In this document: in pieces, positions 28,950-41,414 of the stretch
Layout of the letters: each line of letters opens with the position of its first letter
Numbering within the stretch: position 1 is the first letter of the stretch
DNA from: Obrimoposthia wandeli
Taxonomy: Eukaryota
NCBI GenBank assembly: GCA_977020255.1
Contig: CDROCS010005920.1
Location: forward strand, 1 to 64,000
Direction of reading: 5' to 3'
DNA length: 64,000 bases
The notes under the pieces: model-generated
What the model was told of the DNA's origin: nothing
What the model saw: only the letters and a program-made list of their open reading frames with translations
The model's database searches: none
Program-made: the position numbers and the translations under genes

Positions 28950-31382
28950 ATGCAAAAAATATTATTAACATTGTTAATTACCTTGAGTTTGGTGTTATAT
29001 GGCTATGCTAATGACAGTGAAATGACAAAAAGTCCATCCGGTGAATCAGCTATTCAAAATAGTTTACAAGCCGAAACAAAAATCAAATTTGATTTAATTT
29101 CTGATCCATCAAACCCAATAGTTGTTACTCCAACATTCCTAGCCATGGATTCGGCTGATGGTACGCTAAGTACAGATGGGAACCTTAGTACTAGTCGTTA
29201 TTCAACTAATACAACTGACCCAGCGATAGCATTAGGAAAAACGGATGGGTGGAGTACCAGTCAACCTTTCGTAATTGAGTTTACAGGTAATGCTCTTGAT
29301 GAAAAAACAGTTGGAAATTGCTTTTTCTTAATTGAGTCACGAAATCCTACGAAAGAAAATTCTACCCAAGAAGCAATAAAGCTCTCCGCTGCTGATGGTG
29401 ATTTTATAGTATCAGCCTCAGGCAATAAACTGACTGTATTATTGATAAAGCCCCTTAAAGCTTCGACAAATTATATGTTTGCTATTACTGATGACTTAAA
29501 AGATGACCAAGGTAACAGTGTAGGCATGTCTAACTCTTATGCTTTACTCAAATCAACAAAAAAAACGCAATTAGATGCATTAGTACCTGTACAAGAAATT
29601 ATTCAGGCGACTGAAAAAGAGTTCAATACAATAGGTGTAGCAAGTAGTAATATTATTTTTACCAGTTGGTTTACTACACATTCTGTTGGCAACACACTTT
29701 ATGCGACCAAAATAGCAATCGCCCAAGGATTAGCTATTAATAATCTTTCTGCAATTTGGAAAGACAACGCAAACCCGAATGACGTAGACCTATCAAAAGC
29801 TTATAAGATCAACACCACAGGCTTAACTACAGAAGATTATGCAACAGCACTCGAGAATGACGTAAATTTTACTAAATATTTAGATGAGAAAACAGGTATA
29901 AAAAAATCAAAATTATTAACTATTTATTCAGAAAACCCAGATACAATTAATGTCACATCGGGGTCAGTTAATTTACCTTACTTTCTTGAGACAGGAACAG
30001 GTTGGGCAAGTACTTCTTTCAAATCTGCCGTACCAAGCTTGGTTAAACTATCCAGTATCCTTACTATCCCAGATAGTGCAGATGCACAAATTATAAGTTC
30101 ACAATTAATTAAAAAAGGCATTAATCCTGCGTTATTGGCAACAGACCAAGCTGAGAAATTGAAGTTGATTGGGCTCACACTCAATAAAGCTGACGGTACA
30201 ATGCTTGATGAAGAAAGACTTATGACTAAATATAGTCCAGTACCACAGATAAAATCTATGGAAACAGTGCCTTTCCTATTATTTACTCCAGCAATATCAG
30301 CCGCCCCATTACAAGTTGTTATTTATCAACATGGTATTACTTCAGTTAAAGAAAATAGTTATTTTTTTGCTAAAAATCTAGCAGCAAATGGTATTGCTGT
30401 TATTGCAATCGATAATCCACTTCATGGTTCACGTAGTCTTGATGATCAACGTTCAGCTAATGCTAATATCCAAGCTTATTTAAATCTTGGTAATTTAACT
30501 GTAGCCCGCGATAATATTCGTCAAAGTATTCTAGATATTATAGGGCTAAGAGTCGCATTAACTGTGTCTCAGAAAGCGGGAATATTTGTAGCTAATTCAG
30601 AGTTAAGTAAATTAGCACCCAATAGGCTATCTACTAGATCTAATACCTCATTTTTAGGCCACTCTCTAGGCGGTATTGTTGGTGCTCCAGCAGTTGTTGC
30701 TGCTAATCGAAATCTAGGTAGTGATGACGAAGATGTACTATTTAACTTTAAAAGTAGCGCTTTTGCTAATTCTGGTGGTGATATTGGCAATCTACTCTTT
30801 GGCTCTGAATCTTTTGGATCACTTATTAAGCACAACTTAATGCTAAATCGCATGGCTGAATATCAAGATTATGTAAAAACTGCTTGTACCAATATTTCAA
30901 CTGAAGGTTGGGAAAATAAGTGTTTTGATAATTTCTACAAAGTTGCTTCTATAACAACTAAAGCTGAAATGGATAGTACATTCGCTTCATTTATCTATGT
31001 TGCTCAATCGATTGTGGGTACCGTCGATCCAATTAATGTTTCTCAATTAAAAGATACCAGCGGTAAAGAGATCCTTGCAGATACACCAATGTATATGATG
31101 CAAGTTACAAACGATGATACGGTCCCTAATAAACTAGAAGCAGCGCCGTTAGCAGGTACAGAACCAATGGCAAAATTATTTGGTCTAACTTCGTTAGCTG
31201 AAACAACAACGGGGAACAAACATTTTGGCAAGTTCAATAAAGATGGAAATGGTACGCACAATACAATAGTGGCACCAGGAGCTGAAGACCTACTTACACA
31301 TAAAGAGATCCTATTGCAGCTAATTCAGTTCTATACACTAGATGGAACTATCGTTAATATAGATACTGCTTTTCTTGAGTAA
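28950..31382 (+). CDS. VolA/Pla-1-family lipase/lysophospholipase; lipobox Cys absent
   Basis: LGKTDGWSTSQP, QHGITS.KE, ID.PLHGSR, GHSLG nucleophile, D.TVPN, H near the C-terminus. Confidence 0.9.
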   Translation: MQKILLTLLITLSLVLYGYANDSEMTKSPSGESAIQNSLQAETKIKFDLISDPSNPIVVTPTFLAMDSADGTLSTDGNLSTSRYSTNTTDPAIALGKTDGWSTSQPFVIEFTGNALDEKTVGNCFFLIESRNPTKENSTQEAIKLSAADGDFIVSASGNKLTVLLIKPLKASTNYMFAITDDLKDDQGNSVGMSNSYALLKSTKKTQLDALVPVQEIIQATEKEFNTIGVASSNIIFTSWFTTHSVGNTLYATKIAIAQGLAINNLSAIWKDNANPNDVDLSKAYKINTTGLTTEDYATALENDVNFTKYLDEKTGIKKSKLLTIYSENPDTINVTSGSVNLPYFLETGTGWASTSFKSAVPSLVKLSSILTIPDSADAQIISSQLIKKGINPALLATDQAEKLKLIGLTLNKADGTMLDEERLMTKYSPVPQIKSMETVPFLLFTPAISAAPLQVVIYQHGITSVKENSYFFAKNLAANGIAVIAIDNPLHGSRSLDDQRSANANIQAYLNLGNLTVARDNIRQSILDIIGLRVALTVSQKAGIFVANSELSKLAPNRLSTRSNTSFLGHSLGGIVGAPAVVAANRNLGSDDEDVLFNFKSSAFANSGGDIGNLLFGSESFGSLIKHNLMLNRMAEYQDYVKTACTNISTEGWENKCFDNFYKVASITTKAEMDSTFASFIYVAQSIVGTVDPINVSQLKDTSGKEILADTPMYMMQVTNDDTVPNKLEAAPLAGTEPMAKLFGLTSLAETTTGNKHFGKFNKDGNGTHNTIVAPGAEDLLTHKEILLQLIQFYTLDGTIVNIDTAFLE

Positions 31383-31469
31383 GCTTTGTTGACATATTCT
31401 ATATACGCTTATTTTCGTGAAATGGTCAACTTACTTATACAGGTTGACCATTTTTAGGTAGGTATTAAT

Positions 31470-31580
31470 GGGGATTGTTGCAAAAATGTAAATATCGGCT
31501 CAAAACTCCTTATTTCCCATCTAATCTAGCGATCCAATGATTAACCACTAATTTAAATGGAAACATTGAGCCCTATCCAA
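31470..31580 (+). mobile_element. Decayed IS6 type-C left end
   Basis: GGGATTGTTGCAAAAATG...TTTCCCATC...AAATGGAAACA matches the reverse complement of 13300-13389. Confidence 0.7.
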
Positions 31581-31926
31581 AAACATAACATCCTATCTCA
31601 CTAGTTGGTGGCTACAATATTACTAACGGTATTTCTAGCTCGAATACGTATAACTGCGGTATTGATGTCAGTGGTTATAATATGACAGCTACACTACAAT
31701 GGGAGGCCACTAAACCTTTACTTGTGGTTCTTGGTGATCGTTTAATTATGTGTTGAGTGACTCAACAGGTCCATTTGAACTGGATCTCACCCAATGTATT
31801 GAAGATGCACTACCTCATATTCTTGAACACCTTGAAGTAGCTAATAGCTACTCATTTAATTAAATTTGGTTATTGAAGGTCGGTTTATGAAAAACCAGTA
31901 TTTAACATACAATCTCATTAATAAAT

Positions 31927-32625
31927 ATGGGGATAATGATTATCTTCCATATTTTTAATCAACTTCCTGGTTTCTGGGGTACTAAAGATAAAGATTCTGT
32001 CTTTGTTTTTGCTAATTCAGAATATGGTAAAATAATTGGTGTTGATCATCATTTAGATTGTGTTGGGCGCACAGATTTTGATATGCCAAGCCCAACCATT
32101 GAATGGGCCCCATCATTTCAAGAACAAGATTTACAAGTAATAGATTCCGGAAAGTGTATGCGGGTTCTTGATATCCACCCTTATTCAGATGGGCATTGGC
32201 GTGCACATTTATTCACAAAGATACCGTGGAAAAATGAGGAAAACAAAATAGTTGGGACTATTTTTTCTGGTACCGAGCTAACAGATACCGTTACTCTAGA
32301 AGTTGGCCATTTGATTTGCCAAGCTGCCGGTTTTAGTAAAAAGACTCAGGTTTCATTTAGTTTAGATTTACATAATCAAAAAGTAGCCATTAATACTCGG
32401 GAATCTGAAGTGCTTTTTTTATTACTCTATGGAAAAAAAACTCAGTATATTGCAAGAGGGTTGAATATTTCAGTGAAAACAGTAGAGAACCATGTACTTC
32501 ATTTACGTGAGAAATTCAATGCTTACTCAAAAGCTGAATTAATCGATCTAGCATTAGATTTAGGTTTTGGATCGTATATACCAGAAAGCCTGTTAACAAA
32601 ACAATTATCTGTAATACTAAAATAA
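31927..32625 (+). CDS. vqmA: VqmA-like PAS + LuxR-HTH regulator (true start may be 31888 with a frameshift near 31945)
   Basis: QLPG.WG.KD..SVFV.AN, GRTDF.MPSPT, VLDIHPY.DG.W.AH.FTK.PW, RESEVLFLLLYGKK, IDLALD.GFGS.IP..LL.KQLSV all match V. cholerae VqmA as I recall it. Confidence 0.85.
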   Translation: MGIMIIFHIFNQLPGFWGTKDKDSVFVFANSEYGKIIGVDHHLDCVGRTDFDMPSPTIEWAPSFQEQDLQVIDSGKCMRVLDIHPYSDGHWRAHLFTKIPWKNEENKIVGTIFSGTELTDTVTLEVGHLICQAAGFSKKTQVSFSLDLHNQKVAINTRESEVLFLLLYGKKTQYIARGLNISVKTVENHVLHLREKFNAYSKAELIDLALDLGFGSYIPESLLTKQLSVILK

Positions 32626-33067: not shown

Positions 33068-33756
33068 AACATAGGCTGCCTACGGAAGCAACCAACGATC
33101 TGTTAGTTTACTGTTCATCTATAGGCATAGACAGGTATCTTCCTGTCTATGCCTATAGATGAACCACTCAAAGCCCTTTTCAATCGACAGCAGGAATGGC
33201 TGACGTTCCTCAACAAACACATCGGTCACGTTCGTGAAGCGGTCATTAAGAATGTCACGAAGATGCTTGCCTGTGGCACTGCAACATTTGGCTCCCGAAA
33301 ATATACGTGCTCCAACACTCGCTGCTCCCACATCAAATTGATCAACCAAACCTGTAAGTCCAGAGCCTGCAATAGTTGTGGCACCAAAGCCACAGGGCGC
33401 TGGGTGCAAACTCCGCAATATGTCCTTCCTGATTGTGAATGGCAACACATCACCTTCACGATGCCCGGTTATGCCGCGATGCTGAAAGGGTATGTGAATG
33501 TTGACCCGTTTGAATGTGTGCTGTGCCAAAATCGGTTAGTTTTCAATGGGTATAGAGTCGGAACGCCGCTCTCCGAGTTGACGGCTTCGACGTTAGTGCA
33601 GGTGAGTATGCTGCCGGCCTGATGGCCGGTACGGAATAGGTGTATTCAAACGACGATAAAAAGGCAATATCTGTTTAATAATGCGCCGTTGAATGGCGAC
33701 GAAAAAAGTGCGGGCAATAACAGAGGTGAAAAAAGTCAGTTTGTGCCATGCTATGT
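33068..33756 (+). mobile_element. IS91-family element with an in-frame internal deletion of the catalytic domain (ORF 33149-33622); oriIS tip missing
   Basis: terIS AACATAGGCTGCC; zinc domain QTCKSRACNSCG..HITFTMP fused to GYAAMLKG..DPFEC. Confidence 0.85.
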
Positions 33757-33977
33757 TAGCGATATATTCAACGAATATATCTCATGATAATCGCTTTTTT
33801 AAAACAGCGTTACCATTATAATCAACATCATGAAGTTGAAAAACATTCTTGGCAATATCAATACCCAGTAAATTAATCATCATCATTCCATCTCCCACTT
33901 ATCAATTAATTGCTTATTATTGTCACCATAATCATAGCCTGACGGGGCGTTATGGAGTGGGATGGTTCATTACATTA
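33750..33977 (-). mobile_element. IS1111-type left end and tnp 5' fragment
   Basis: TAATGTAATGAACC end; INLLGIDIAKNVFQLH; inverted homolog of 37183-37400. Confidence 0.85.
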
Positions 33978-33984
33978 GAGCCAA

Positions 33985-34713
33985 CTAAATGCCAACTTTT
34001 AATAAAGAGCTAATTTCTATAGGCTTACTATAAAGAAACCCTTGATGTAATCCTCTGTATCTCAGTAATTCATAATGTTGATATTCTGTTTCTACACCTT
34101 CAAATATAAAACGACTGATACCAAATTCAGATAGAGAAGTAATAAAGTTTGACATCTTGGAAGGACTATCTAGGTAATTATAGAGAACGCTTTTATCAAA
34201 TTTAACAATATCCCAATCTGCAAAACTTAACGTATTTCTTGGAATTTCGTCTGATAAAAAATCATCAAGCCATATTTTATGCCCTGATTTTTTTATGTCA
34301 CGAATTGTCTTGATTAATCGACATCGTTCATATTTTTCTGTTGGTATTGTAGTTAGTTCAAATGCAATTTTTTTCGTTAGACTTTTAATTGTATCATTAA
34401 TAAAAACATTGTCCGCCATCACTTCTGACGAGCAATTAATAGAAAATAATACTAATTTTTCATTGGAAATTCTATTTATTTCATTTACTTGATGTCGTAT
34501 TATCTCTTTTATTACATCGTTAGATATGTTTTTAAAAAACAACTCATTATCTATATGACCATTTTTAAATTTAGTAAGGAACTCAAATGCAAAAATTTTA
34601 TTTGTTCTAGGGTTAACTATTGGTTGAAGCATGAATTTGAAATATGATATTATATTTTTTTTGTCATCAATCATTTTGTAATGGTTGTTTTTTGTTAATG
34701 TTGTGTAGTGCAT
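33985..34713 (-). CDS. Stand-alone EAL-domain protein
   Basis: QPIV, EFL, SIN, FEL, WLDDF, VKFDKS, EGVET, QGFLYSKP. Confidence 0.9.
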   Translation of the reverse strand: MHYTTLTKNNHYKMIDDKKNIISYFKFMLQPIVNPRTNKIFAFEFLTKFKNGHIDNELFFKNISNDVIKEIIRHQVNEINRISNEKLVLFSINCSSEVMADNVFINDTIKSLTKKIAFELTTIPTEKYERCRLIKTIRDIKKSGHKIWLDDFLSDEIPRNTLSFADWDIVKFDKSVLYNYLDSPSKMSNFITSLSEFGISRFIFEGVETEYQHYELLRYRGLHQGFLYSKPIEISSLLKVGI

Positions 34714-34723
34714 AACTCACTTC

Positions 34724-35137
34724 TTATTCGTTCCAGACATCTATTGTCATAGATTCTAATTTATATTTAAGTAGCTGTGATTTTAAGTTTTTTATTTCCA
34801 ACTCATAAAGACGATTACAATCAATACGTTTTCTCTTATTTCCAATTGGTATAACAATTTGAGCATAAATCCCTATTTTATCTTTTCCTTTAATATTTCG
34901 ATTATAGTTGCGATTAGTCGATAATATTTGATCATGATCATTATCAATTTTCATTCCCATCAAGCCTGTCTGTATGTACATATCAGATGCAATAGTCGAT
35001 TCGCATGTTGTGCCATCACTTGTTGAAATACGATCATACCCAGAGGGGATTGTTGCACTTGGTATATCTAATGATTCCGCAAAACTAATACTATGATAAA
35101 AAAACATAAAGATTAACACGTAAAAAAAACATCTCAC
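34724..35137 (-). CDS. Secreted two-Cys protein with a C-terminal coiled coil
   Basis: Signal peptide; DRISTSDGTTCES, GIYAQIVIPIG, RIDCNRLYELEI. Confidence 0.8.
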   Translation of the reverse strand: MRCFFYVLIFMFFYHSISFAESLDIPSATIPSGYDRISTSDGTTCESTIASDMYIQTGLMGMKIDNDHDQILSTNRNYNRNIKGKDKIGIYAQIVIPIGNKRKRIDCNRLYELEIKNLKSQLLKYKLESMTIDVWNE

Positions 35138-35138
35138 T

Positions 35139-35522
35139 TTACTTATCCTTAATTAATTTTTTTATCTTATCTTTGGGATAATATAATTTTATCTTTGTGC
35201 ATATTCGCGTTCTCAAGTTACTTCCATTCTTAGGGATAGATACTGAACATAGCTTATACTCATTAAGCTTTGATGCTGGTATCCCATTGATAATGATTGA
35301 GTATTTTCGATAATCGCCTACTCCTACTTTGATATTACTATCAATAATTTTACCATCGAGCTCTATATCAAAATATGTTGTTGTTTTATCTTGACTTCCA
35401 ATTTCAATTTTAATTTTTTGGCTACCAGTCAGACTTATTGCTTTAAAATTTATTGGTGATTGTGAGTGAGAAAAAACTATTGAACTAAAAAGCAAGCTAC
35501 ATAATGTAATTATTATCTTCAT
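35139..35522 (-). CDS. Secreted two-Cys beta-rich protein (chaperone-like?)
   Basis: Signal peptide, HSQSP, KLCSVS...RTRICTKI; ATGA overlap with the upstream gene. Confidence 0.78.
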   Translation of the reverse strand: MKIIITLCSLLFSSIVFSHSQSPINFKAISLTGSQKIKIEIGSQDKTTTYFDIELDGKIIDSNIKVGVGDYRKYSIIINGIPASKLNEYKLCSVSIPKNGSNLRTRICTKIKLYYPKDKIKKLIKDK

Positions 35523-36415
35523 GGATTACATGTTACTGTTGTTTTAATCTGGTATTTACCTGATTTTAATTGATTTTTTTGTAATGATACAAATGGGCTC
35601 ATTGTAATTACTCCAGAGCTATTGATTGAATAACTACTATTGACAAGTACACGATGATTACTACTTAAATCTTCATGATGTGCTCTAATAGAACTCCTAC
35701 CTAATGGTGATATTTTTTTATTCATAACGTAATAATATTCAAGATTATTTTCGAATTCTTTTTTTATTGATCTTGAAAACCTATTCCCTTTATGATCTTT
35801 ACCTGATACTTTACTATCGAATGATAAACTTTTAGCAGAGTCAGTATCGTAAATAAATGTTGCATTATTTGTATTAGTGTAATCGTTGAATGATATCCCA
35901 CCTCTAGCATCAATAACAGATAATCGACAATAATTTGATTGAGTAACTTCGATAAAATTAATAGATAATTCATCAGTACCATTTACTTTTAATCTAAGAC
36001 TTTCTGCATGTTGACTTTTCATAATAAAAAAAATAGTTTTAGTTTTATCATCGTCACCATTTAGGAAAAAATCAACTTCAAAAGTTTCACCAGCATATAC
36101 CCTCCGAATAGGTTCCTCCCCTTCGGGTTGATATAAAAATATTGAAGAATCTCCTGCTGAAAGGACATTGATTTTAAATGTTTTAGATTTTATTTTTTTA
36201 TATGAAATAGTTAAAAAAGCACCTTTCATTAAGAATGTATTTTCATTAAATGTAAATTGTTTAGGAATTATATGATTATTTGTACTGTATTTTATAGTGT
36301 AATTTGAATTGTATATTTCTTTTTGCTCAGAAGACGATGTTATCGTATGACTTTGAGCTAAAAAGGAACATGACAAACTATATACACTGAAGCTCAGCCG
36401 TAACAATGTATTCAT
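35519..36415 (-). CDS. Secreted two-domain adhesin/pilin-like protein (298 aa)
   Basis: Signal-like N-terminus; C-terminal domain bounded by SNYCRL and SGKYQIKTTVTCNP. Confidence 0.72.
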   Translation of the reverse strand: MNTLLRLSFSVYSLSCSFLAQSHTITSSSEQKEIYNSNYTIKYSTNNHIIPKQFTFNENTFLMKGAFLTISYKKIKSKTFKINVLSAGDSSIFLYQPEGEEPIRRVYAGETFEVDFFLNGDDDKTKTIFFIMKSQHAESLRLKVNGTDELSINFIEVTQSNYCRLSVIDARGGISFNDYTNTNNATFIYDTDSAKSLSFDSKVSGKDHKGNRFSRSIKKEFENNLEYYYVMNKKISPLGRSSIRAHHEDLSSNHRVLVNSSYSINSSGVITMSPFVSLQKNQLKSGKYQIKTTVTCNP

Positions 36416-36902
36416 ATTTACCTTTTGATAAATCTATTCTATCAACTTGTGGAGCACTAAGAATAACTTTTATCTTATCTGAAGTATTAATAGAATTAAC
36501 ATATCCACTTTGTTTTGATGAACTAAGATCAGAAACTGTTGTATCTATAGCTATATCATAACTTGAATTAGCTGTTTGTGTTGATATTTTAAGTGCCATT
36601 TTTTTATCACCAAATGAGCCTTGGTCAACGCCATGCCTCGGACTTAATGAGGAATTACTTTCTAACTCAAAACTAATATCAGCATCATTCGTGGCACTAT
36701 TCGTATTAAAGGCAAGAATATGATATTTATCAGCATCTGAATCGCCTTTAAATGAAATACCTTTATTTATACCAATGGTCTCAGCGGTCATCTCGCAAAT
36801 TTCATCAACAGTTTCACTAAATCGCATACTAACAGCTTTGCTTTGAAGTGGTAAGAAACACATACTCATGATAACACTAATTTTCATCCAATTTAAAAAC
36901 AT
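36378..36902 (-). CDS. Secreted pilin-like subunit (174 aa)
   Basis: Signal peptide ...SKA; VSMRFSETVDEIC...GKYEYIVTAELQCI, a fimbrial-subunit-like pattern. Confidence 0.72.
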   Translation of the reverse strand: MFLNWMKISVIMSMCFLPLQSKAVSMRFSETVDEICEMTAETIGINKGISFKGDSDADKYHILAFNTNSATNDADISFELESNSSLSPRHGVDQGSFGDKKMALKISTQTANSSYDIAIDTTVSDLSSSKQSGYVNSINTSDKIKVILSAPQVDRIDLSKGKYEYIVTAELQCI

Positions 36903-37182
36903 ACTTTTATTACCTTACATCTAATCCCACAATGAACCATACCAAAAAATACCTTCCCAAAAGGGACGGGTCGGATCTTACCTCTAAATATGATATGGAT
37001 CAACAAACAAAATGGAGTTTATATATTTTATTTATAATTACTCCGTTAACCATAAACAGTAATGATTGCTTTTGAGTTGAATGAAAATCATAAAGGAAGT
37101 CATCAGTTTGTGAAAAACTGCTGTTTTTAAAATGAGAATTAATCGTTGAATTGTCGAAATCAAGACTTCTTAATACGGGGCT

Positions 37183-37838
37183 TAATGTAATGAACCATAG
37201 CGTCACGTCAGGCTATGATTATGGTGACAATTAATAAGCAATTAATTGATAAGTGGGAGATAGAGTGATGATCATTAACTTACTGGGTATTGATATTGCT
37301 AAGAATATGTTTCAACAGCATGGTGTTGACTGTAAGGGTAAAGCGGTTTTAAAAAAGCGATTATCAAGAAATAAACTGGCCGAATATATCGCTAATATAC
37401 CACCGTGCACGATCGTCATGGAGTCTTGTGGAGGAGCCAACTATTGGCCCGCGTCTTCCAACGGTCAGGACATACAGTGAAACTCATTAGTACTCAGTTC
37501 GTAAAACCGTTTGTTAAACAAACAAAAATGATGCGAATGATGCTGAGGCCATAACAGAGGCAGCCAGTAGGTTATCAATGCATTTCGTACCAATCAAGCA
37601 GATTGAACAACAAGATATACAGTCTCTACATCGAATTAGAAGCCAATTAGTTAAAAATAGAACGGCATTGATTAACGAAATAAGAGGGCTCAATTTGGAA
37701 TACGGCATTACTATTCCAACAGGGGCATCAAAGGTAAAAACTGAATTATGTTCCATTATTTCCAATGAAAATAATGAGCTGACTGTGGCCTCTCGTGAAT
37801 TCATGAATGATCTCTACAATGAGCTCGTCGAAATTGAT
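37183..37838 (+). mobile_element. IS1111-type IS110 element, 5' half, frameshifted
   Basis: GIDIAKN.FQ, VMESCGGANYW, FVKPFVK..KNDANDAEAI, QQDIQSLHRIR. Confidence 0.88.
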
Positions 37839-37930
37839 AGTCATAATGCGAAAGCTAATGAGTGCAGGCGGAGATCATAACTTAGCACTCCAGTTTGCGA
37901 CACAACCAGGAATATTGAAATTCCTTACCA
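37830..37930. mobile_element. IS6 left-end stub (minus, to 37907) followed by half of an oriIS-like hairpin (37908-37930)
   Basis: Reverse complement GGTTGTGTCGCAAACTGG...ATGACTATCAATTTC; then AGGAATATTGAAATTCCTTACCA. Confidence 0.7.
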
Positions 37931-38157
37931 CTAAAGTTATTGGATGATTTTGATTTATCGTGGTTGTGTCGCCGTAATTAACGTAACACCCGTAATGAGT
38001 CTCGCGGATAAACAACCACCAAGGTTGAATACTGATTCACCTCTTGATTGAAGAAAGACCATTTGTGCAGCTTTATCTCGCAGATGACGGATTTATACAA
38101 TACCCCAAAGTCCCCCTCTTGTACTATAACTTCCAACATCAAACAGGAAGCTCTATT

Positions 38158-38466
38158 ATGTCTAGCATCTTCAAAGCCGCTTTTATTTTTATCGCACCCG
38201 AAGCCGACCCCTCCCGCGATTGCTCTTGGGTGCGTACCGAAGAAGTACACGTAAAAACCATTGCGGTTTCAAGTTATAAACAAGCTTGCAAGCTAATTGA
38301 CTCATTAGTTAAAGAAGGTATTCAAGCCATTGAACTCTGTGGTGGGTTTGGCCATCAAGGGGTCGCAGATGTAGTAAAGGCAGCCAATTCGCGTTTGCAT
38401 GTGGGTGTTGTACGCTTTGACAAACATCCTTGTTTGGACTTTGCCAGCGGTGATGAGTTATTCTGA
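38158..38466 (+). CDS. DUF6506-like small protein
   Basis: KAAFIFIAPEADP, GIQAIELCGGFG, VGVVRFD.HP. Confidence 0.78.
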   Translation: MSSIFKAAFIFIAPEADPSRDCSWVRTEEVHVKTIAVSSYKQACKLIDSLVKEGIQAIELCGGFGHQGVADVVKAANSRLHVGVVRFDKHPCLDFASGDELF

Positions 38467-38544
38467 TCCACATATAAAACATCAACGGCACCACCTCTAA
38501 TACCGACATTATGATCGCAAGAGGTGGTAGGTAACATAGAAATC

Positions 38545-39342
38545 ATGTATACGCGACAAATCAAACCAGCACATCAATTGAGTCCATATATTGCCCATTT
38601 TTGGTTTTGGGAGCAAAACTATACCTTAGCACTCCCTGATATGTTACCTGGGACCGGGGTTGAGATGCTGTTCAACTTCGGAGATGCATTAACAATACAA
38701 ACCGATCAACAATCGCGACTTTTCTTTGGTGACGCTGTCGTGATCTGCCCACGAAAATCACGTATTCAGATCCAGCCAACGGGCGTAACAAAAACACTTT
38801 CAATACGTTTTCGCTCAGCTGGATTTTTCACCCTCTTTGGATTGCCCTTAACTGAACTATCAGATCAAATAATCCCGACAAGTCAATTATTACCCGCTAG
38901 TTTACTAACACACCTTGTCGAATCAAAAAGCGATATTACGAAGGTTACCTTGCTAGAACAATGGCTACTACAACAAATGGTTAAGATCAAAAATCAAGAT
39001 TCTGCACTACAATGGGCCATCGATAAGATTTATTACCAATATCACAATGACAGCATTAATGAAGTCAAAAAACAGTTAAAATGTAGTGAGAGAACATTTC
39101 AACGAAAATTCAAAATATTCACGGGAGTAGATGCAAAGTACTTTGAGCGAACCGCACGATTTCAATCGGCACTAAAAACGCTGTTAGCGGCTCATTCAAA
39201 CCAATATATAACAGTTGCACTCGATCATGGTTACTGTGATCAATCGCATTTTATTAAAGACTTTAAATATTATACTCAGGTGACACCAAGCGAATATCTG
39301 ACTGAAAGGAATTTTTATTTAAACTACTATACAACAACCTAA
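38545..39342 (+). CDS. AraC-family regulator
   Basis: P...L..YIAHFW N-domain; SERTFQRKF, GYCDQSHFIKDFK. Confidence 0.9.
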   Translation: MYTRQIKPAHQLSPYIAHFWFWEQNYTLALPDMLPGTGVEMLFNFGDALTIQTDQQSRLFFGDAVVICPRKSRIQIQPTGVTKTLSIRFRSAGFFTLFGLPLTELSDQIIPTSQLLPASLLTHLVESKSDITKVTLLEQWLLQQMVKIKNQDSALQWAIDKIYYQYHNDSINEVKKQLKCSERTFQRKFKIFTGVDAKYFERTARFQSALKTLLAAHSNQYITVALDHGYCDQSHFIKDFKYYTQVTPSEYLTERNFYLNYYTTT

Positions 39343-39420
39343 TTATTAAAACCAATAATCAAGCTATAAAGAGCTCTATCGCTAAGTTCTGAAGGCTGAT
39401 CTGCTTGGAAGCAGTTTTAA

Positions 39421-39487
39421 GCACTAGCAGCCTAATTGTATCTGGAAATCAATACGCTGTAATTATTAACAACTTTGCGACACAACC
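39421..39487 (+). mobile_element. IS6 right-end stub
   Basis: GCACTAGCAGCCTAATTGTATC...CTTTGCGACACAACC. Confidence 0.75.
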
Positions 39488-39622
39488 AGAAAACTCAAGA
39501 AGGAATATACACGCGATTTTTGTTCGTTGATTAAAATGTTATATTTCATCTCTGGTAAGATTTGTTATCTTCATTTTTTAGTGTAAATTGAGATTTAAAC
39601 TAAATAACTATATGAAATTAAA

Positions 39623-40297
39623 ATGAATAAAGAAGCCACAACTGCCGGACAAGCTGTTTACTCAAAAAAAGTACTTTCAATATACGATTTCTGGGTTTTG
39701 GGTGTGTCTAATCACTACCTTTGGAAATGTCCAACACGATTTATTAGTGAGTTATTTTCAAAACAAGTATCATCTAATCACTTAGATGTTGGTGTAGGAT
39801 CTGGTTATTATCTTAAGCATTTTTTACCTCAAACAACAAAGCGTATTGCTCTGTTAGATTTGAATAAAAATAGCCTTGACACGGCATCAAAAACAATTAG
39901 TCATTTTCAGCCAGAAGTTTATTGTGGAAATGTACTTGAGCCTCTTGAATTAAATATTCAAAAATTCGATTCTATTAGTGTTAACTATTTACTTCATTGT
40001 TTACCTGGAAATATAGCCGAAAAATGCGTTACATTTAAGCATTTAAAAAGTCATATGAATGATGGCGCAATATTGTTTGGTAGTACAATTTTGGGTAAAG
40101 GTACGACTCAAAACTTTTTCGCTAAAAAATTAATGGGTGTTTACAATAAGAAAGGGATATTTAGTAATCATAACGATGACCTTGATTCGCTGTTGATATC
40201 ATTAAACGAACATTTTACTGATGTAAGAGTGGAATTATTAGGGTGCGTAGCGTTATTCTCAGGTAAAAAATATAATCAGGTAACTAAAGGTCTTTAA
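39623..40297 (+). CDS. Class I SAM-dependent methyltransferase
   Basis: HLDVGVGSG motif I, LLDLN, FDSISVNYLLHCLPG. Confidence 0.88.
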   Translation: MNKEATTAGQAVYSKKVLSIYDFWVLGVSNHYLWKCPTRFISELFSKQVSSNHLDVGVGSGYYLKHFLPQTTKRIALLDLNKNSLDTASKTISHFQPEVYCGNVLEPLELNIQKFDSISVNYLLHCLPGNIAEKCVTFKHLKSHMNDGAILFGSTILGKGTTQNFFAKKLMGVYNKKGIFSNHNDDLDSLLISLNEHFTDVRVELLGCVALFSGKKYNQVTKGL

Positions 40298-40306
40298 CCC
40301 TCAGCC

Positions 40307-41094
40307 GGTTCTGTCGCAAACTGGTGCGGTAGGTTATGATCTTCGTCATTACTCACCACGTCGAATCCTATGACTATCAATTTTTCAAGCCGACATTTTC
40401 CGTCAGAGATAATCCTTCAGTTGGTTCGGTACTATCTCTCTTATAAATTGAGTTACCGTGAAATTGAAGAAACCTTTGCAGAACGAGGTATCAATGTTGA
40501 TCACTCAACATTGAATCGCTGGCTGATTCAATATGTGCCATTGCTAGAACATCGAGCTCGCCACGAAGAAACCAGTGCTTCTTCGTAGCGAATGAATGAG
40601 ACCTATATCAACGTCAAAGGTCAGTGAAATTATTACTACCGAGCCGTTGATAAATATGGTGATGTGATTGATTTTCTACTGCGTAATAAGCGAAATGAAA
40701 ATGCGGCTAGAGCCTTTTCCCAAAAGGCCATCGGCCAACACGGATTACCTAAAAAGGTGATGATTGACGGCAGCCATTCTAACACGTTAGCACTGCATCA
40801 TATCAATGTTGGGTTTTGGAATAACAGGCACATGCTGAGTCTAATTGAAATCCTTCCAATCAAGTATCTACACAATATTGTCGAGCAAAGCCACCGCAGA
40901 AATGAACCAGGCTCTAAATCTAACAAAGGAGCCAAGGCCACATTAGCTGGTATAGAACTGTGGTCGATGATGAGGAATGGGCAGCTCGACAACCCTGATG
41001 GTTTATCTCTTTGGGATGAATTTTACGCGCTAGCAGCCTAATTGCATCTAAAAATCAATACGCTTGTACTTCAGTAGAACTTTGCGACAGAGCC
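40307..41094 (+). mobile_element. IS6 type-B-like element, transposase disrupted
   Basis: Ends GGTTCTGTCGCAAA / TTTGCGACAGAGCC; internal stops. Confidence 0.9.
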
Positions 41095-41414
41095 CCTTGC
41101 CCGGTTATGCCGTGATGCTGAAAGGGTATGTGAATGTAGACCCGTATGAATGTATGTTGTGCCAAAGTCGGTTGGTTTTCAATCGGTATCGAGCCGGAAC
41201 GCCGCTCTCAGAATTGATGGCTTCGACCTTGGTGCTGGTGAGTATGATGGCCGGACCGAGATAGGTGTATTCAAATAACGGAGAAATGGCAATATGTATT
41301 TAATAATGCAGCATTGAATGGCGACGAAAGAAACGCGAGCAATCACAGAGGTAAAAAGAGTTTATTTGCGCCAGCCTATGTTGATGGTAGGAAATATTGA
41401 AATTCCTTACCATC
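41095..41414 (+). mobile_element. IS91-family 3' fragment with oriIS hairpin
   Basis: LPGYAVMLKG..DPYEC, homologous to 33465-33756; ends GATGGTAGGAAATATTGAAATTCCTTACCATC. Confidence 0.8.

Follow-up and report, generated by a model that had tools for sequence, protein, structure and literature searches.

We analyzed a stretch of 64,000 nucleotides (the window) from contig CDROCS010005920.1 of the Obrimoposthia wandeli assembly GCA_977020255.1 and characterized a block of five genes on its minus strand (positions 33985-36902), denoted A, B, C, D, and the EAL gene in the order in which they are read. An initial annotation, made from the nucleotide sequence without database searches, had described the block as a pilus- or adhesin-like operon lacking an usher. 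Judging from protein identity, the source of the DNA is a Photobacterium-like bacterium within the eukaryotic assembly, because the window encodes a pyruvate-formate-lyase-like protein that shares 87% identity with that of Photobacterium chitinilyticum.

A compact operon encoding four secreted proteins and an EAL protein

All five open reading frames (ORFs) were found to be intact and tightly coupled, as the initial annotation had claimed, with junctions of -38 nt (A/B, with the start of B inside the 3' end of A), -4 nt (B/C), +1 nt (C/D), and +10 nt (D/EAL), where negative values are overlaps. The block is also as AT-rich as had been described, with a GC content of 27-31% within the operon versus 35-44% in the flanks. 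N-terminal signal peptides are present in all four proteins A to D, and the mature part of each contains exactly two cysteines, which bears out the earlier description of four secreted two-cysteine proteins. The cysteine pair makes up the only invariant columns in each family alignment. The signal peptides, read from the ORF sequences, are ordinary, with neither a lipobox nor a prepilin motif.

Searches against Pfam and NCBIfam gave no match for A to D, and in the block only the EAL domain was recognized. Scans of the window proteins with the same databases identified no genes for curli, type IV pili, or type V pili. The promoter and terminator scan was uninformative, with 26 sites found and 26 expected from shuffled sequence. 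The features of the operon and its borders are listed in Table 1.

Table 1 Coordinates of the five genes, the region upstream of A, and the bordering insertion sequence (IS) fragments in the window.
Feature	Position	Strand	Evidence
A, pilin-like secreted subunit, 174 aa	36378..36902	-	ORF; putative signal peptide cleavage after residue 23
B, two-domain secreted subunit, 298 aa	35519..36415	-	ORF; variable N-terminal domain ~22-146 and A-like pilin domain ~147-298
C, single-domain immunoglobulin (Ig)-like secreted protein, candidate mini-chaperone, PapD N-domain-like, 127 aa	35139..35522	-	ORF; phrog_25455
D, secreted, unannotated family, 137 aa	34724..35137	-	ORF; phrog_37374; 285 representative clusters
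EAL protein, stand-alone, putative cyclic di-GMP (c-di-GMP) phosphodiesterase or sensor, 242 aa	33985..34713	-	Pfam EAL; atypical loop 6
Non-coding region upstream of A, with candidate sigma-70-like promoter at 37114-37087	36903..37194	-	Consensus scan, 10/12 matches, weak
Left IS110-like fragment, inverted copy of 37195-37402	33749..33955		Inverted repeats I1 and I3, 86-92% complementary
Right IS110-like 5' end, followed by frameshifted transposase at 37253-37880	37195..37402		Repeat comparison, ORFs

Protein A is predicted to have a pilin-type fold

The AlphaFold2 model of A was all-beta, with a predicted local distance difference test score (pLDDT) of 74 and a predicted TM-score (pTM) of 0.68. 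Searching the PDB with Foldseek placed CfaB at the top (E 1.3e-3, probability 0.99), and the top 50 also contained CS20, FimG, FimF, the pilin domains of PapG and FimH, CsuA/B, and CupE, interleaved with unrelated beta-sandwich folds. The best match by VIA-align was CfaE-CfaB (Z 7.1, root-mean-square deviation 4.0 over 130 residues). Among the Swiss-Prot models, nearly all of the top 21 Foldseek matches were chaperone-usher fimbrial subunits; CfaB and CooA led the list (E 7e-4), and the alignment began at residue 1 of A. The fold of A is predicted to be of the pilin type, with chaperone-usher subunits as its best matches, and the proposal that the 174-aa protein is the major subunit agrees with this prediction. 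A sequence profile of A retrieved no pilin at E<=10 from the PDB sequences.

We examined 57 A-type sequences and found an N-terminal strand motif, h-x-F-x3-(V/I)-x3-C, and a C-terminal motif, G-x-Y-x-h-x-T-x(1-2)-h-x-C. The only invariant columns were the cysteine after the N-terminal strand and a cysteine located 1-4 residues from the C-terminus. The closest relative of A, the single match in a word-indexed search, was 75% identical and located on a 1.8-kb metagenomic contig.

Protein B combines a variable domain with an A-like domain

The initial annotation had noted that A and the C-terminal domain of B are alike. Direct BLASTP of A against B did not detect this (E 0.096, not significant), but a profile of 69 A-type proteins, with no B included, matched residues 161-297 of B (E 5e-8). 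The N-terminal half of B is unrelated to A and highly variable. Its neighbors in the language-model space of the Atlas (residues 22-150) were fimbrial tip adhesins at 0.79-0.84, carrying the names DUF2544/YadU, PapG, EcpD, and FimH-like, which we treat as a lead only. The earlier description of B as a two-domain tip adhesin holds for the A-like C-terminal domain, and the neighbor lead would agree with an adhesin-like N-terminus. One close homologue of B was found among 5.8 billion clusters, at 83% identity, and it lies on the same 1.8-kb metagenomic contig as the relative of A.

In Bradyrhizobium-like loci related to the operon, a second A-type protein begins directly at the first cysteine, without the N-terminal strand. 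From its sequence, this is the look that would be expected of a non-donating tip subunit.

Protein C is predicted to bind A in the manner of a donor-strand chaperone

The mature form of C has about 109 residues, with two invariant cysteines and a near-invariant asparagine in an 'x-L-x-N' strand. C matched phrog_25455 (E 1e-9), and a word-indexed homologue search with C gave no match. It consists of one domain and is not of the two-domain PapD_N plus PapD_C type. The domain ends in KIKLYYP, while PapD-like chaperones have an RIKLFYRP-type motif after the G1 strand; the pattern [KR][ILV][KR]h-x-[YFW][RK]P was present in 18 out of 31 PapD-like chaperones. Among named Atlas clusters, the neighbors of C were PapD_N chaperones (0.80, a lead only). 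An hhalign comparison of C with PapD-like chaperones initially gave a probability of 94-96%, which we rejected because it was inflated by the signal peptides and the controls A and D scored as well. After the signal peptides were trimmed, C aligned with 31 Vibrionaceae PapD-like chaperones at a probability of 12.5% (P 0.0023), while the controls (A, D, and reversed sequence) gave P values of 0.43-0.74. These results are suggestive of homology between C and PapD at the sequence level. The C profile found nothing significant among the PDB sequences, where the best match was a WxL-interacting protein (E 0.025).

We then predicted the structure of the A-C complex. The interface score ipSAE was 0.62 (0.62, 0.64, and 0.62 in three runs), compared with 0.00 for the best of three controls; this mark was reached by 51 out of 78 solved complexes and by 2 out of 108 mismatched pairs. 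At least 83% of the contacts were common to the three runs, and the partner pLDDT was at least 85. Residues 84-90 of C were predicted to lie between the first strand (13-17) and the C-terminal strand (143-148) of A. The predicted contacts run parallel to the C-terminal strand (A143 with C85/86, A145 with C87, A147 with C89) and antiparallel to the first strand (A13 with C89, A15 with C87, A17 with C85). This predicted arrangement supports an interface with the donor-strand complementation geometry of chaperones from chaperone-usher systems, as a likeness only. The 127-aa and 137-aa proteins had both been suggested to be assembly factors, and for the 127-aa protein C the predicted binding of A favors this suggestion.

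Protein D belongs to a widespread secreted family with a predicted amphipathic hairpin

D matched phrog_37374 (E 9e-11), and an exhaustive HMMER search placed 285 representative clusters in its family at E<=1e-3. The family has a conserved N-terminal motif, IPSGYDRxxTxDGTTCES. The AlphaFold2 model of D (pLDDT 80, pTM 0.44) shows a long hairpin (54-64, 87-97) and a helix (107-136) in addition to two short strands. The hairpin is amphipathic, with one strongly hydrophobic face (mean hydropathy of about +3.2 versus -0.7 in the second strand), and its connecting loop varies within the family and contains many Asp, Asn, Ser, and Tyr residues. The disulfide pair consists of the invariant C45 and C107, and the C-terminal helix carries Leu/Ile at heptad spacing. 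In some relatives of D, the C-terminus continues into a peptidoglycan-binding domain of the OmpA-like or SPOR type. Neither Foldseek nor VIA found a solved analogue of the D model in the PDB, and the AlphaFold DB clusters contained only uncharacterized members of the D family itself.

Based on the hydropathy of the hairpin, the coiled coil, and the OmpA-like and SPOR fusions, the hairpin would lie in or on the outer membrane, with the helix and C-terminus facing the periplasm and cell wall. A pore formed by D would be plausible only as a large oligomer, and D may instead be an anchor.

The module is conserved across genera and in phages

We catalogued 56 related loci, of which 54 contain D. 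In all 54, D adjoins C and at least one A-type gene (one or two), and C is always directly upstream of D in the catalogued loci. Genome contigs were scanned for D with a seven-sequence alignment, as an alignment of 37 proteins was too diverse. D was present in 55 out of 401 Vibrionaceae species genomes and in 10 out of 401 evenly drawn Pseudomonadota species genomes. Part of the operon DNA was found in a metagenome run from an invertebrate gut, and one from marine sediment contained a small share of the sampled words of the operon.

A synteny search for the block revealed that the full order A-B-C-D-EAL recurs in four other loci. These lie on the P. chitinilyticum chromosome, in Vibrio nigripulchritudo, where three conjugative plasmids match and the two examined in detail carry all five genes, and in a further Vibrionaceae genome, which shows B-C-D-EAL at the edge of the fetched stretch. 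Between the window and the P. chitinilyticum and V. nigripulchritudo versions, protein identity was 61-66% for D, 45-53% for C, 42-47% for the EAL protein, 21-30% for A, and 19-27% for B, against 87% for the pyruvate-formate-lyase-like housekeeping protein of the window and P. chitinilyticum. Surface adhesin operons typically consist of conserved machinery and fast-changing subunits. The gradient from D and C down to A and B would fit such a division into conserved machinery and variable surface subunits.

Other layouts were also observed. Several Vibrio species carry A-C'-B-C-D; in these, D continues into an OmpA-like domain and the EAL gene is missing. Most Vibrionaceae carriers (type III) have the order C-D-A-x-A'. 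Among the loci from alphaproteobacteria-like contigs, the Bradyrhizobium-like ones have A-C-D-A2 and the sphingomonad-like ones A-C-D. In Vibrio phages of 80-130 kb, A-C-D is located between a tail-like gene of 690-818 aa and an M15 endolysin gene (locus L004, 4133-5457; loci L013-L016, 2133-3297), and 87 phage records in total contain the module. The phage versions of C and D are phrog_25455 and phrog_37374, whose function is not annotated and which are adjacent in Vibrio phage K478b. This matches the statement in the initial annotation that the 127-aa and 137-aa protein types resemble adjacent genes in marine phages and bacteria.

Several observations were made on individual loci. A regulator gene of the winged-helix (MarR-like) type lies ahead of the operon in each of the two V. 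nigripulchritudo plasmids (L003, 10205-10678; L005, 3579-4046); the window has no counterpart of it, and an IS fragment is found on that side instead. In one Vibrio metagenome-assembled genome (L012, 5980-6773), the D::OmpA fusion is split into frames of 189 aa and 73 aa, probably by a frameshift or as a pseudogene; a second, intact copy lies on another contig. The type III loci (L022, L040-L058) encode an extra secreted protein 'x' of 137-158 aa between the pilin-like genes, which is absent in L046-L048. It has a conserved C-terminus, ...DF(I/M)VRV(I/M)VN, and could be given no family assignment. In the phages, the D frame with its signal peptide overlaps roughly the last 85 nt of C, and phage K478b has a gene for a 63-aa lipoprotein after the A-C-D cassette. 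The overlapping genes near the M15 endolysin gene prompted us to consider C and D as a spanin or lysis cassette. We rejected this reading: C and D are beta-rich, secreted, free of a lipobox, always accompanied by a pilin-like gene, and also present in bacterial operons with an EAL gene.

The related loci contain no usher

Donor-strand pili of Gram-negative bacteria are thought to require an usher of 800 residues, which catalyzes polymerization and provides the pore. Here, pilin-like subunits and a chaperone-like partner are encoded with only a 137-aa protein in the place of the usher. We found no usher in the window or on its contig, in agreement with the initial annotation, and none in the related blocks of other genomes and phages, which were examined with flanks of 5-8 kb. 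The usher model PF00577 was searched in five carrier genomes; P. chitinilyticum and one other gave no match, and a third gave only one match, below the threshold. PapD_N also had no match in the P. chitinilyticum genome.

A separate, canonical-looking archaic chaperone-usher operon was found elsewhere in the assembly (contig C506, 3088354-3092538, 41-45% GC), encoding a 231-aa PapD_N chaperone, an 821-aa usher, and a 301-aa protein. An usher acting in trans is therefore possible for this strain. It cannot be the solution in general; P. chitinilyticum carries the module and has no usher in its genome.

The EAL protein accompanies the operon type found in the window

The initial annotation listed an EAL gene as an operon partner, and this was confirmed by PF00563, which matched residues 25-231 with 68.5 bits (cut-off 31.3). 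All five loci of the window's type (type I), and no others, have the EAL gene after D. In an alignment with solved EAL proteins (Lmo0131 and a Vibrio EAL structure), the E(F)L, N, E, DD, K, EGVE, and Q positions are conserved; the metal and substrate roles of these residues are those known for the family. Phosphodiesterase activity is uncertain, because loop 6 reads DDFLSDEIP and departs from DDFGxGYS. A stand-alone EAL gene also ends fimbrial operons such as that of the Klebsiella type 3 fimbriae, where it is mrkJ. The terminal position of the EAL gene suggests feedback between fibre production and c-di-GMP as in these operons, from which the present protein differs in loop 6.

Comparison with known fibre systems

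The closest resemblance was to the alternate (class 5) chaperone-usher fimbriae CFA/I (CfaA-B-C-E) and CS1 (CooB-A-C-D), which supply the best structural matches of A, namely CfaB, CooA, and CfaE. Shared features are a major subunit of about 150 aa in its mature form with a donor-type N-terminus, a two-domain tip adhesin with a C-terminal pilin domain, and a chaperone that donates a strand, as is predicted here. Unlike these systems, the present operon has no usher, and its chaperone candidate C is a one-domain protein (109 aa mature), whereas theirs are two-domain proteins (about 215 aa). The disulfide of A joins the first strand to the C-terminus, no similarity is detectable at the level of hidden Markov models, and D and the EAL gene are additional.

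The Elr/WxL pilus of Enterococcus faecalis has an usher-free chaperone-pilin core that works by donor-strand complementation and exchange (bioRxiv 10.64898/2026.10.17.759780). Its adhesin and anchor are variable, and the anchor is attached to peptidoglycan (bioRxiv 10.64898/2026.10.17.759780). The weak PDB sequence match of the C profile to a WxL-interacting protein is a further point of resemblance. However, it is Gram-positive and restricted to Bacillota, and it relies on a membrane-anchored chaperone and a sortase with no outer membrane to cross, whereas the proteins here are periplasmic and D would replace the sortase substrate or anchor. A third comparison is the DraD/AfaD invasin of Dr/Afa, an Ig-like subunit with a non-classical F-strand disulfide that reaches the surface without its usher (PMC3112383). 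DraD is an accessory subunit within a full chaperone-usher operon and folds without a chaperone, whereas here the whole operon is without an usher yet keeps a dedicated chaperone-like gene.

In the full-text literature, of which the coverage was incomplete, no account of a Gram-negative donor-strand system without an usher turned up; this does not prove novelty.

A putative usher-independent fibre system

We consider it probable that the operon encodes an undescribed, usher-independent fibre system of the donor-strand type that is related to chaperone-usher pili. A would be the polymerizing Ig-like shaft subunit and B the two-domain tip adhesin, with an A-type pilin domain as its C-terminal half. 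C would act as a one-domain periplasmic chaperone, either related to the N-terminal domain of PapD or convergent with it. The last beta-strand of C would cap the open groove that lies between the first strand and the last strand in both A and B, by donor-strand complementation, and subunits would be joined when this strand is exchanged for the N-terminal strand of the next subunit. D, with its disulfide-stapled, amphipathic hairpin and coiled coil, would be the envelope component in the place of the usher, and may either oligomerize into an outer-membrane platform or pore or anchor the base of the fibre to the cell wall. The EAL protein would couple the system to c-di-GMP. The five genes, their conservation and synteny, and the lack of an usher were observed directly. 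The pilin-like fold of A and the A-C interface come from structure prediction, and polymerization, surface export, the role of D, and the activity of the EAL protein are the steps that we infer.

A stronger version of this proposal is that A, C, and D make up a self-sufficient pilus pathway with a one-domain chaperone, in which the 115 residues of D oligomerize into a new peptidoglycan-tied platform for assembly and secretion at the outer membrane. Such a pathway would be compact enough for phages to carry it as a cassette of three genes. We regard this version as possible but tentative, and would sooner doubt it than rely on it.

Several points weigh against the proposed fibre system. The first is the cysteine pair of A, which, at one end of the groove, would lock the first strand and the C-terminus together. 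In classical pilins, the disulfide instead joins the A and B strands (PMC3112383). The disulfide of A could close the fold and leave a protein that does not polymerize. Second, D is small, and a low-order oligomer could not pass a folded pilin. Our confidence is held at a moderate level because of these two points, the possible closure of the fold of A and the large oligomer that D would need for a pore. In addition, the fold matches of A (TM-score of about 0.35, Z below 8) fall in a range that generic beta-sandwiches also reach, and the fimbrial, SCPU, and CS1-type Pfam families had no match at E<=1 in 21 A-type members. The profile signal between C and PapD is weak once the signal peptides are trimmed, and the PapD models PF00345 and PF02753 had no match at E<=1 in 30 C members. 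The score of the A-C complex may in part reflect the predictor's memory of solved chaperone-pilin complexes. The linker between the domains of B keeps the A-like N-terminal strand motif, so this strand may be part of the domain and not a free donor. Finally, we found neither RNA runs containing the locus nor expression data.

The alternative that survives best accepts A and B as chaperone-usher-type subunits and C as their chaperone, but assigns export to an usher in trans or to type II secretion, leaving D only as a peptidoglycan-linked anchor or terminator. DraD offers a precedent: this subunit of the chaperone-usher type, which has an unusual disulfide, is brought to the surface by type II secretion independently of its usher (PMC3112383). 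Both the OmpA-like or SPOR fusions of D relatives and the separate usher operon on contig C506 would fit. We nevertheless judge export by other machinery to be unlikely: three carrier genomes, P. chitinilyticum among them, have no usher above the cut-off, A-C-D occurs in phages as a unit complete in itself, and D is the most conserved protein and never absent, as would be expected of a core component more than of a dispensable anchor.

It is also possible that no fibre is formed, with A and B as monomeric Ig-like proteins held by C and with D as an envelope tether, serving in receptor masking or superinfection exclusion. Such a function would explain the phage copies. The module lies beside tail-fibre-like and lysis genes in the 87 phage records, and the cysteine pair, which links the first strand to the C-terminus, could close the fold of A. 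However, the best fold matches of A are polymerizing pilins, the predicted A-C geometry is the one that keeps pilins competent for assembly, and the operons hold a major subunit together with a two-domain or strand-less subunit, like pili with a tip and shaft. We therefore rate a non-fibre role as rather improbable. That the genes are chance ORFs or decaying remnants in an AT-rich, IS-riddled island is hardly credible: many broken IS elements lie around them and A and B have one close homologue each, but the five frames are intact, A to D have signal peptides, and the order and overlaps are kept across genera at 19-66% protein identity with invariant cysteine pairs.

If fibres do form, the usher-independent system would represent a minimal way for a cell to assemble adhesive fibres and export them. 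Donor-strand assembly could then be studied in a tractable three-gene system, and it would be shown that an entire adhesin machine can be transferred by phages. Through the conserved EAL gene, the system would be linked directly to biofilm signaling. The module has no Pfam, NCBIfam, or functional PHROG annotation and yet is present in about one in seven of the Vibrionaceae species genomes searched, as well as on a virulence plasmid of a shrimp pathogen, in genomes of Bradyrhizobium-like and of sphingomonad-like bacteria, and in Vibrio phages by the dozen.

Flanking regions and mobile elements

The operon forms an AT-rich island with an IS110-like 5' end of about 207 nt on each side, the two copies being inverted relative to each other. 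These inverted repeats could allow the inversion of the whole 3.2-kb operon. The low GC content, the IS flanks, and the conservation pattern together point to horizontal acquisition.

The surroundings (33149-33955 and 37195-41400) are an IS graveyard of broken IS91, IS110, and IS6-like pieces, including an IS91 zinc-finger fragment (33149-33622) and IS6-like pieces (40370-41041). Direct repeats with 80-89% identity were found at 33462-33757 and 41098-41382. The upstream neighbors at 28950-32625 encode an 810-aa secreted protein and a 232-aa PAS-LuxR regulator. The 810-aa protein contains a 'bacterial virulence factor lipase N-terminal' domain and a weak Big_5 match below the Pfam cut-off.

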